Of a stretch of DNA of 64,000 nt, positions 26,901 to 30,762 are shown one piece after another. Source of the DNA: Callorhinchus milii. Its lineage: Eukaryota. Made by a program: the position numbers and the translations under genes. The first letter of the stretch is position 1, and each line of letters begins with the position of its first letter. The stretch covers positions 2,294,001 through 2,358,000 of the forward strand of contig NW_024704763.1 in assembly GCF_018977255.1 (NCBI RefSeq). The letters are read 5' to 3'. The notes beneath the pieces are model-generated. The model worked only from the letters and a program-made list of their open reading frames with translations, was not told where the DNA came from and ran no database searches.

Positions 26901-29900
26901 AGTATCCCCATTCGTCTTCTCTTTCAAATCATTCTTCTCGACACTAACACCTTTGCGACACTTTTAGTTTAGACTTCAGCGTGGCCTTTCCCATTACTAG
27001 CACTGGGGAGAATCGTTGTAGTTGTTTGTTAGGTCTCTCTCTCCACCCATCAAATAAATAAAACTGACGTGCTGTGGGGCTCTGCAGTCTGGACAGGCAG
27101 GAACAATGTGGAAAAAAATCAATCCTGGACTCGACTGAATAAATTCCTATTTTAAAAAAATGGAACCTATAGTAAAATACCCAAATGCATTTTATTTTTA
27201 CGGAACATTATGAAACTTCGCAAGCGAAGCCTGACAATGAAAGAGGCGATGGTGTGCATTCTGGTGAAGGGCTGTGTCAGCAACCGACAAAACAAAAAGA
27301 TACTTCAGTGAAATCACCAGCACATGTGGTGGTGCCCACGTGACATACCGCAGTGCACTTTATCCAATTCACTCGTTCCGACAATTTTCTCAGATTAAAC
27401 TTCCTGCAATCAGAGTAGCAGAGTGGCCCGTGTTAACAACGTGAATCCACCACGCAATTTCCTCACAAAGTAAGGTCCAGATCTAAACAATCTATTTGGT
27501 ACTGCTGAGCAGTTTTATTACACTTTACTCGTCATTATGTTCCCCCATCTTTGCTATAGGATAACAAACACAATATCTCTTCAATCCTTACACTACTGTT
27601 CCCGCTCTAACTGTGCAGACCTCCTAGATTCTGTCTGACTGAGAATACATAGCAATTCTTAATGAAGTCTGCCAGCTCAGACAGTCAGTCAGTCAGTCAG
27701 TCAGTCAGCGTGAGGGAGGTTCATGTTGTGAACAGGAAAGAGCCACTGTTGACACAGCTTCTCCACCTACTCACTTCCACCCACCTACCCACACACTGCA
27801 GGAGTTGGACGTCTGATGCCTTTATTTCAGAGCTATAATTTGTGTTTTTTCGTGGTGAATGATGTACGTATATTTCTCTTCCCTCAGATTGAGAGTTGGA
27901 AACGCAAAGCTACGGAGGCCTGTTTCACCACGAACATGCTGCTTGCGGCAGGTAGGGCAATCCACACCCATTTGGCATTGTCACGCAGGTTTATTCCATG
28001 TAATCTCCACGGAATTCACAGGTGGATCCAAGTGGAAAGCTCCCTCATTGCAAACGCTTTGGTGTTTTGCACCATGAAGATTTTAAAGAGGGAAGGAAAT
28101 GCTATCCCATCGAAAAACAAAAGGCGTCGAGTTTTACAAGTTCACACGTAGTCACATTGTGGAGAAATCCAGAGTGGGCAGAATTGCAATATGTTCACCA
28201 CAAAGAGAGCAATATTGTATTTTCGCCCATTTGCTCAGTTGGTTCACTAAGGTGGAGGGGGAATTGGTATCCAGCAACAACAGGGTAGCGTTCCAGAGTG
28301 CTACAAACAAGGGAACACATTGAGAATTAGAAAAATACATTAATGATGGCAAAATGACCCAATCACTTGCACATCGCAGAGATCCTTGGCTTCAGGGCAT
28401 CTCTACTGGGAGCAGAGGTCTCATGAGTCAATTGCCGATGAGATTTAATAGGTGCCACCAGCTTGGGTTACATGGTTTTGTTGTTGTTGCTGCTGGTCTT
28501 GTTGAATGCAGTTCAACTTTGCTTCAGTTGACTGCCTGGAAAGGTAAGTGTTTGCTGCTGTTTTGACATCAGATCGATTTCTACCCTCGTTCGAAAATGG
28601 CAAACAAAGCGACCACTCGTCATATTCAGTTCATCAGCATTAATGCTTTAAAACGGGAACCACCTCTGGGAATTGAAAGCATAGTCTGTCACATCTATGT
28701 TTGACGTCACCTTTAAAATATTGATATAGAGTGTTAAATCGAGTGCATGATCTGAATTCCAATCATTAAATAAAATTCCCTCTCCTGGCTTGTGGGACAT
28801 TTCGGGGAAATATTCTTTCATATGCCATTTGTTTCAAAATTAAGCAACTGAGCATGACACGTAAGAGGATGATAGAAGCCCAAATCAGAAAGTTATGGCT
28901 TGGTTGCTGGTATTCACAATCTTGGCCGGGCTGAAAACTCACAGTACCTAACAGATCAGGTTATTCTCCACAGAAGGCTGGTTTGAGAGTGGCACGAGAC
29001 CAAATCCACTTTGCTAGGAAATAGTGCATGCTAGGCGGAAGAAGAGAAATCAAAGGTCAAGTGAAAATAAGGTAGATTAAACACAGGGGGTAAAAGTTTA
29101 AATAAGCAAACACATTGGCGGTGCCAAAACACAGGCAAACAGCAATAAGAAACTGCCTAATGTATGTAATCCTTATATTTGAGATAGCGCCTCATCACGT
29201 CATTGAGACGTCTCGAAGTGCTTCATATAATATAAATTTAATGAGATGAAGCTTGTTCAGATCTTGCAAATACTCTAGACTTGCTCTGTGCAATCACTCA
29301 GCAGATAGGTAGTTTGTTTACTTGGTTCATTTCCATGATTTGTACTAAGTCAACTCATCCAAGCACAGTTGATGCTACAGTTTGCCTCAAAACTCCCGGC
29401 TAGGGAGGATTTTTAATTACTATTAAAAGGAATTGAGCGAGCATGTCACTCTTGCACTAAAAGTAACAAAGAAAAAGGCGTCAAACATAGTCTAACAGAT
29501 TGTTCTGTTTGCCCTTTTCAGCGAGAAGAACAGACCGAACAAATAAGGAGCAGGCAGACATGCCAAAGGTTTGGCCAGTGCACGATGAAGTTTAGGCGTT
29601 AGGGACTAGGAATCACCTCAGTAGAATCTCGGTTACGTTCAAGCCTTGAAAGTGACTCCTATTTGCAGAAGCAACACTCATGGTACAAGTGCAACGTTGT
29701 TTATATCCGGTTCATGAACGATTAAATATTTGGCTGTAATCTTATGGTTTCCTTGTATGAGAATCTTTCAACACTTCTTAGATCACTCAGATTGAAAGAA
29801 GCCTTGGGGGGATACTGTGGGTCTTTGAAACTCCTCAGTTTATACATTTTCACTGATTACATAGAAATATAGATCGTGGGAAAGGGTCTTTCGGCCAACT

Positions 29901-30762
29901 TTACACAGAGCTACGCACACCCATTCCCTTCATACTTATAAGGCAGCAGGATTAATAAACAGAACACGTTACTTGTTCCGAGTTTATCTGCATTAGCATT
30001 TGATGGATGTGGTACTGACTCGGTTATTTTCCCAACAGACAACTAACTGAATCAACTTGCAGTCAATTACGAAAATGACCGATTAATCTTTTCAGTGCGA
30101 TTGGCATTGCCCACAAGACACTGAGCTGTGTAAATTGGCCACTGGTGTGAACCCCCCCACCCACCACCACAAACAGCTACGTCAATTTAAATCAAAACAA
30201 TCATAAGGCTGGAATTCCACTATTCCTTGAAAATCAGAATATGTCATACATATAAACGGTTTATAAAATGGAGCAGTTTATGAAATGACCGCTGTATGAT
30301 TGCGCCCCAATTAAACATCATTCTCTGCAACTTATGCATTTCAAAAGGGAATTTAATACTTCAGTAATTAGCTTTTTCCTTTAAAATTAGAGGAACAGCG
30401 GATCACTGCTGCCAATATTCTCAGACTAATTCATGGTAAACATAATGCAACACACAATTTTTTTAAATGGTAATGTTAAAAATCAGGCACATGCTGGGAC
30501 ATTTTATAACCTGTTAATATGTATGCACTTGCTTGGTTTAGATAGATGAGGTGGTGAGCACTAAACTCTCTCAAAAAACAATCAATCAATCCCATCTAAC
30601 CCATTGTACTGTGACGATGTATTTCTTCTTCTCCCTCCTCCACTTTCAGACCCTCTCGTCAATCAAATGGAAATGGTGACCGAGATAGTTGTGCCGACCG
30701 TAAGCACCCTTTGCATTCTCCTGAGTGCCGTTTTCCTGATGTTTTTACTTCGGAAGCACTGA
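20956..30762 (+). CDS. LCTL: Lactase-like protein / gamma-Klotho, GH1 family, transmembrane isoform (about 568 aa; 583 aa with cassette exon)
   Basis: Exons 20956-21082, 21433-21593, 22125-22212, 22763-22872, 23442-23570, 23945-24040, 24269-24323, 24818-24979, 26080-26354, 26442-26568, 26698-26897, 27888-27951, (30391-30435), 30650-30762. Signal peptide, [42 protein letters not shown] tail [22 protein letters not shown]. All phases consistent. Confidence 0.95.
25349..25790 (+). mobile_element. L2-type LINE 3' fragment inserted into a CR1 remnant
   Basis: [12 protein letters not shown] end, C-rich 3' UTR, gggacgtcctcctgacgtgaaaggcg and (ttg)n tail. CR1-like minus-strand sequence flanks both sides. 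Confidence 0.75.
28452..28531 (+). CDS. LCTL: Candidate alternative LCTL C-terminal exon encoding a GPI-signal-like tail [26 protein letters not shown]
   Basis: AG at 28450-28451, phase 1 matching exon 12. Uncharged hydrophobic tail to TGA. Consensus donor aag/gtaagt at 28543/28544. Polypyrimidine tract is weak. Confidence 0.5.
29522..29595 (+). CDS. LCTL: Alternative LCTL terminal exon encoding [24 protein letters not shown]
   Basis: Strong acceptor (ctaac...tgttctgtttgcccttttcag), phase 1 matching exon 12, ends HDEV-stop. ATTAAA at 29721 and AATAAA at 29954. Confidence 0.7.

Follow-up and report, generated by a model that had tools for sequence, protein, structure and literature searches.

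The question raised by this locus is in how many ways a single gene for lactase-like protein (LCTL, also known as gamma-Klotho or KLPH) can end, and how each ending would hold the encoded protein in the cell. The gene was studied in a stretch of 64,000 nucleotides of Callorhinchus milii DNA (assembly GCF_018977255.1, contig NW_024704763.1, positions 2,294,001 to 2,358,000 of the forward strand), the whole of which is called the window here. In the papers covered, LCTL is treated as a single-pass membrane protein encoded by a lens-preferred gene, required for lens suture formation and able to act as an FGF19 co-receptor, and one of them describes KLPH as a type I membrane glycoprotein (PMC13168428). 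A first-pass annotation of the window had proposed that splicing from exon 12 to alternative 3' exons acts as a three-way switch, making the protein anchored by glycosylphosphatidylinositol (GPI), retained in the endoplasmic reticulum (ER) or transmembrane. The analysis presented here indicates that this part of the window is very probably the 3' end of the LCTL gene, with three conserved ways of splicing out of exon 12.

The LCTL gene and the layout of its 3' end

A glycoside hydrolase family 1 (GH1) gene of 13 exons occupies approximately positions 20983-31272 of the window on the + strand, and three of its exon translations match the Pfam GH1 family PF00232, with expectation values (E) of 2.2e-22, 3.6e-12 and 2e-19. 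Full-length vertebrate proteins named "lactase-like protein" (LCTL) align in order to the 13 exons in tblastn searches, and the identity between the window protein and these named relatives, summed over the tblastn matches, is 57-63%. Protein searches were performed with exon 11 alone first and then with single stored proteins as queries, and cluster look-ups were added. The exon 11 query recovered LCTL proteins, and it is to LCTL that the closest named relatives belong, and neither to lactase or Klotho nor to the cytosolic enzyme. At the active site the window encodes ..ITFNNPW.. and ..YVTENG.., residues also present in the consensus of 54 orthologues. On this reading of the sequence the active site is atypical, as the acid/base Glu is replaced and the nucleophile Glu retained, a combination which we take to be the defining trait of KLPH.

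The features on which the following analysis depends are:

26698..26897, + strand, LCTL exon 11, last part of the GH1 domain (contig joints on both sides; PF00232, E 2.2e-22)
27888..27951, + strand, LCTL exon 12, the 64-nt shared exon before the tail choice (contig joints; tblastn matches of orthologues)
28452..28531, + strand, candidate (a), hydrophobic tail and stop, judged a chance intronic open reading frame (weak acceptor, no homologue)
29522..29595, + strand, putative alternative last coding exon (b) (acceptor tract; homology to HDEV-ended isoforms)
29721..29726, + strand, ATTAAA, possible polyadenylation signal after (b) (pattern match only)
30391..30435, + strand, putative alternative cassette exon (c) of 45 nt, encoding a 15-residue insert (AG before and GT after it, phase 1 at both ends; homology)
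30650..30762, + strand, exon (d), coding part of the canonical last exon (contig joint from 27951 to 30650; tblastn)
30763..31272, + strand, 3' untranslated region to the contig end (contig of run X1; AATAAA at 31056 and 31191)

Exon 12 and the pieces (a) to (d) were found by direct reading of the sequence exactly where the first-pass annotation had placed them, with the phase-1 compatibility that it had described. Exon 12 is preceded by AG and followed by GT, begins in phase 0 and ends in phase 1, after the first base of a codon; LCTL orthologues match it in tblastn with E values between 4.6e-5 and 1.8 and 35-68% identity. Exon (d) encodes a hydrophobic stretch, the membrane helix, followed by a cytoplasmic end of three residues (RKH) and a stop at 30760-30762, and is 72-82% identical to its orthologues (E as low as 6e-14, tblastn). 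This arrangement, one helix near the C terminus and a cytoplasmic part of a few residues, is that of a type I membrane protein.

The region 26000-31600 was additionally compared with four sequencing runs of the same organism that contain 6-19% of the words of the gene, which is approximately its exonic share; their RNA origin is a guess. The runs are stored as assembled contigs from unspecified tissue, in which rare variants are dropped, so that they do not demonstrate absence. In run X1, a contig of 1752 nt (depth 30.7) joins the segments 26079-26354, 26442-26568, 26698-26897, 27888-27951 and 30650-31272, with GT..AG at each joint, and run X4 supports the joint 26568/26698. The junction from 27951 to 30650 is the sole exit from exon 12 in these RNA-like contigs. 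Run X4 also contains an unspliced contig of 156 nt (30598-30753) that crosses the acceptor at 30650 and represents pre-mRNA or DNA in that run.

Homology of the HDEV-ended exon

Exon (b) follows the sequence ..cccttttcag, the best acceptor tract among the 172 AG sites of intron 12 (17 pyrimidines in 20 bases). It encodes 24 hydrophilic residues, with no hydrophobic stretch and no membrane segment, ending in HDEV before a stop at 29593-29595. Two protein searches scored on the membrane tail could not rank anchor-less isoforms. In a third search, only the end of the GH1 domain and exon 12, both from the lungfish protein, counted towards the score; of the 120 proteins listed, 11 are anchor-less and end in HDEV; two bichir X3 isoforms were added from the cluster look-ups. 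In all, 178 LCTL proteins were classified by their C-terminal form, and 13 of them, from 12 other species, end in ..[KR][VA]W[PL][VLI]HDEV directly after the exon-12 residues, without a membrane segment. The species are Latimeria chalumnae, the bichirs Polypterus senegalus and Erpetoichthys calabaricus, the frog Rhinophrynus dorsalis and eight teleosts. Perca fluviatilis has two such proteins, one with exon-12 residues matching paralogue type "a" and the other with residues matching type "b".

The tail encoded by (b) aligns with the HDEV-ended orthologues from acceptor to stop, 16 of its 24 residues are identical to those of Latimeria, and the four terminal residues HDEV are invariant in the 13 orthologous tails. 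When the HDEV-ended proteins were compared with the whole window by tblastn, they matched (b) at E values from 3.8e-6 to 4e-3. A read-through model of a piranha carries the counterpart of exon (b) in another frame, which points to conservation of (b) at the DNA level. By its homology, (b) is a real and conserved exon, the orthologue of the exon that closes the annotated anchor-less isoforms of LCTL. The ATTAAA at 29721..29726 is a weak signal, as ten such hexamers occur across the scanned region 27952-31400.

In several models and open reading frame calls of other fishes (P0282, P0291, P0015 and P0026) the reading continues from exon 12 into intron 12, and the tail starts with GQF.. or GQC..; such ends reflect intron retention or mis-annotation and not a further conserved isoform.

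Homology of the cassette exon

The segment (c) is open in phase 1, and its product would be inserted in the stalk that connects the GH1 domain to the membrane helix. An LCTL fragment of the electric eel with a 15-residue insert at this position was recovered by the exon 11 search of all protein representatives. Of the 178 LCTL proteins, 83 have the insert, which is combined with the membrane exon in 80 and stands without it in three; the carriers are teleosts, bichirs, a paddlefish, several frogs, a snapping turtle and five geckos. The window sequence is identical to the commonest form of the insert at 14 of 15 residues, which makes (c) better conserved than the neighbouring constitutive exon 12, and it stands in the right order, frame and phase. 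Cassette-bearing proteins compared with the whole window by tblastn match (c) at E 0.004-0.09. Isoform pairs with and without the insert are annotated within the same species, such as the teleost "lactase-like b" X1 (585 aa) and X2 (570 aa). The first-pass annotation had listed (c) as a phase-1 cassette of 45 nt among the exons of its switch. As a conserved exon it is borne out, with no change in the type of anchor: judged by its homologues, (c) is a real and old alternative exon that lengthens the stalk and leaves the anchor as it is.

A structural view of the insert was also attempted. The AlphaFold model of the long bichir isoform, made with the alignment of 54 sequences, has a mean predicted local distance difference test score of 60.7, falling to less than 50 along the greater part of the stalk and insert, and was rejected as unusable.

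Two database entries with unusual ends were seen during this analysis. Isoform X3 of Stigmatopora nigra (P0215, P0216; 559 aa) represents a fourth kind of annotated LCTL tail: the insert is followed by the beginning of the last exon, the helix is cut out and the protein ends in ..HMEMRRN. This tail was seen in this one species only. The LCTL protein attributed to "Lampetra planeri" (P0160, 585 aa, on a contig of 28.9 kb) has a tail identical to that of spiny-rayed teleosts such as P0159, and looks like fish contamination of the assembly, not a lamprey gene.

Phase compatibility and the hydrophobic candidate

Phase compatibility by itself is no more than what is expected by chance. Intron 12 has a length of 2698 nt, and 54 of its 172 AG sites open phase-1 tails of at least 24 residues. 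Open, phase-preserving AG..GT segments of 27-150 nt number 113 in the intron and 95 +/- 18 in shuffled sequences; with a stricter splice-site filter the values are 5 and 4.7 +/- 2.9. The phase criterion thus selects nothing alone, because any AG could open a "terminal exon", and the phase and open reading frame statistics did not distinguish the real exons from the false one. The splice-site context does discriminate among the candidates: the 20 bases before the AG contain 9 pyrimidines in (a), 17 in (b) and 14 in (c), compared with 14-19 in the four RNA-confirmed exons. It is homology, not phase, that raises (b) and (c) above chance, and the explanation of both as chance open reading frames was ruled out by their homology to annotated LCTL isoforms. 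Since the sole repeat found by self-comparison of intron 12 is an element similar to a short interspersed nuclear element (SINE) at 29167-29234, none of (a), (b) and (c) is a repeat within the window.

For candidate (a) the situation is different. The model of the first-pass annotation, in which (a) would give LCTL a GPI anchor, (b) retention in the ER and (d) a membrane helix, has some features of the sequence in its favor. Candidate (a) has the most hydrophobic of the phase-1 tails opened by the 172 AG sites, with a mean hydropathy of 2.8 in a stretch of 15 residues, small residues precede its hydrophobic run as in GPI signals, and a strong-looking donor, AAG|GTAAGT, follows at 28543/28544. 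A GPI signal has small residues from the cleavage site onwards, then a short spacer and a hydrophobic C-terminal stretch, and the composition of (a) fits this loosely. The tail, which follows ..aatag, has 26 residues with a long run of Leu and Val and a stop at 28529-28531. However, this Leu run is read from a run of TTG and CTG, and with 9 pyrimidines in 20 bases the acceptor is the weakest of the candidates. A tail resembling (a) was found in 0 of the 178 LCTL proteins, including the 120 that were scored regardless of their tail and did recover the HDEV form. A tblastn comparison with 296 proteins gave only low-complexity matches on (a), at E 0.095 or worse. No RNA-like contig covers (a), the depth being zero in the four runs, although contigs cannot prove absence. 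We conclude that (a) is most likely a chance open reading frame and not an exon, and the full three-way model is hardly credible. The idea of an exon specific to this lineage at (a) likewise finds no support. What holds of the proposed switch is that (b) and (d) are alternative 3' exons, as seen from the orthologous isoforms of 12 species, and what falls away is the GPI-like end. LCTL therefore has a two-way choice of anchor, between the membrane and a soluble HDEV end, together with a stalk insert, and not a three-way switch.

Proposed splicing scheme and use of the alternative exons

In the scheme that we propose, the donor of exon 12 would pair with one of three acceptors, at 30650, 30391 or 29522. 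Splicing to 30650, as seen in the RNA-like contigs, gives the known type I membrane protein. Splicing to 30391-30435 and from there to 30650 would give a membrane protein with 15 extra stalk residues just outside the helix. With splicing to 29522 the reading frame, and presumably the transcript, would end, leaving a complete but anchor-less GH1 domain. As LCTL is a protein of the secretory pathway, its HDEV-ended isoform would be soluble there, either luminal or secreted. The two alternative last coding exons, anchored and anchor-less, stand in order in the window, and elsewhere both forms are annotated within single species, bichirs and perch among them.

Three observations weigh against this scheme. 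The depth over (b) and (c) is zero in the four RNA-like runs, in which contigs drop rare variants; the only contig that spans intron 12, from run X1, skips both exons; and most of the orthologous isoforms are automatic models (RefSeq X-numbered entries and genome-project predictions), not cloned cDNAs. The first two would be expected if (b) and (c) were relics, conserved but unused in this lineage, with the canonical membrane form being the only one made. An unused exon should decay, however, and (c) keeps 14 of 15 residues, while (b) keeps 16 of 24 relative to Latimeria, including all but one of the last nine. The AG (and GT) sites and the open frames of both have remained intact while the expressed exon 12 has drifted to 35-68% identity, and contigs of this kind cannot show absence. 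We consider it highly improbable that (b) and (c) are relics. From the intact splice sites, the open frames and the strong conservation we infer that both exons are used in Callorhinchus milii. It is important to mention that the first-pass annotation had linked its own rejection to two findings together, only junctions to 30391 or 30650 and other tails conserved in no further vertebrate. The first was observed, in that the contigs contain only the junction from 27951 to 30650; the second was not, as (b) and (c) are conserved elsewhere.

For the annotation of the locus this means that two of the three candidate exons, (b) and (c), merit annotating and (a) does not. A soluble isoform that is conserved in the coelacanth, bichirs, teleosts, frogs and the window genome also suggests that a part of LCTL function may lie off the membrane.

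Possible fate of the HDEV-ended isoform

A KDEL-type C-terminal tetrapeptide usually ends in Leu, as in the PROSITE pattern. The tail of (b) and the 13 orthologous tails depart from this pattern, as all of them read H-D-E-V. The first possibility is that HDEV is a weakened retrieval signal of the KDEL type, by which a part of the soluble protein would be held in the early secretory pathway and the rest secreted. From the tail sequence this may be so, but we regard it as a tentative reading with less than even support. Against it stands the retention of Val in 13 of 13 tails, though Leu is a single base change away.

A second possibility is plain secretion, in which the isoform would be an extracellular or circulating gamma-Klotho and HDEV would bind a partner other than the KDEL receptor. 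The same invariant Val speaks for it, and so do the binding data. One review quotes the order of in-vitro binding as KDEL > HDEL > DDEL > HDEV, with HDEV the weakest binder (PMC12328878), and another states that the last two positions of the tetrapeptide contribute most to contact with the receptor (PMC9220330). A secreted splice form has also been described for alpha-Klotho. No partner is known, however, and the resemblance to HDEL is striking for a protein of the secretory lumen. Mouse KLPH, too, has reportedly been located in the ER (Ito et al. 2002). Plain secretion may well apply, with a chance that falls just short of even.

The invariant Val and the low ranking together argue for either a deliberately weak retrieval signal or a different partner. 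Between these, we lean slightly towards plain secretion with some other partner over a tuned weak retention.

Other features of intron 12

A further feature of the intron is the repeat found by self-comparison:

29167-29234, SINE-like repeat in intron 12 (self-comparison)

Five more copies of it, with 78-86% identity, are present in the window near 5678, 12039, 18097, 21822 and 62541. Coverage of the copy in intron 12 is very deep in each of the four RNA-like runs and sums to a depth of up to 726. A (TCAG)n microsatellite at 27671-27720, approximately 170 nt upstream of exon 12, was left out of the read coverage as a repeat.

A segment of intron 12 at 28046-28110, within the open reading frame 28004-28285, has a faint likeness to a 14-residue part of exon 11. 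In BLASTP the E value is 0.009 against exon 11 of the window and 0.015-0.3 against several GH1 proteins; for this segment there is no Pfam GH1 match and no similarity at the DNA level. It is either a very old relic of an exon duplication or a product of chance.

Evolutionary age and meaning

The window protein is about equally distant (57-63% identity) from the LCTL of ray-finned fishes, lungfish, salamander, frogs and gecko, whereas these are 66-83% identical to bichir LCTL in the alignment of 54 sequences. Such an equal distance is consistent with a lineage that lies outside the bony vertebrates or with one that evolves fast. If the window genome is an outgroup, both alternative exons predate the split of the jawed vertebrates.

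On this basis a wider proposal can be formulated: a regulated, anchor-less gamma-Klotho may have existed since the origin of jawed vertebrates, with HDEV as a deliberately weak ER-retrieval signal in which every lineage seen has kept Val in place of Leu, and splicing would set the shares of the protein at the membrane, in the ER lumen and outside the cell. We regard this combined proposal, which is drawn from comparison of sequences, as unlikely. If true, it would matter for what LCTL does in the lens and as an FGF co-receptor, two roles that have been considered for the membrane form alone. The isoforms as such are already public as automatic models, and the choice between a membrane and a soluble form by an alternative last exon is a known mechanism. 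A literature search, with most subscription papers outside its coverage, returned no study on LCTL splice isoforms, on the lctla and lctlb tails or on HDEV in LCTL.

Comparison with known systems

The closest comparison is with LCTL itself in other vertebrates, in which the annotated isoforms diverge at the corresponding point behind the exon-12 residues and take the same three C-terminal forms. In Polypterus senegalus they are X1 (584 aa), X2 (569 aa) and X3 (555 aa), a trio with the layouts (c) plus (d), (d) alone and (b), respectively. The teleost "lactase-like b" has X1, X2 and X3 of 585, 570 and 553 aa, and the HDEV end is found in Latimeria in XP_064422022.1. The window exons (c) and (b) align residue for residue with these isoforms. 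The difference is that the annotated isoforms are gene models of bony vertebrates, and the contigs of Callorhinchus milii contain the plain membrane form only.

Acetylcholinesterase uses alternative 3' exons to choose its anchor, and LCTL resembles it in that a shared exon of the catalytic domain precedes alternative last exons, the choice of which determines how the protein is tethered. Unlike acetylcholinesterase, LCTL has no supported GPI exon: the choice is between a helix and no anchor, with an insert that is neutral for the anchor.

A second parallel lies within the Klotho family. Alpha-Klotho, also a type I membrane protein, has a secreted, truncated splice form without a membrane anchor, as described in three papers (PMC7822350, PMC8255843, PMC5991181). 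By that description, the anchor-less LCTL form differs from it in keeping its whole single GH1 domain and in gaining a conserved tail.

Finally, the end of exon (b) resembles the KDEL and HDEL signals in being an x-D-E-x tetrapeptide at the C terminus of an anchor-less protein, with three of its four residues equal to those of HDEL. It differs from them in its last residue, Val, and HDEV is the weakest binder in the ranking given by the review (PMC12328878).

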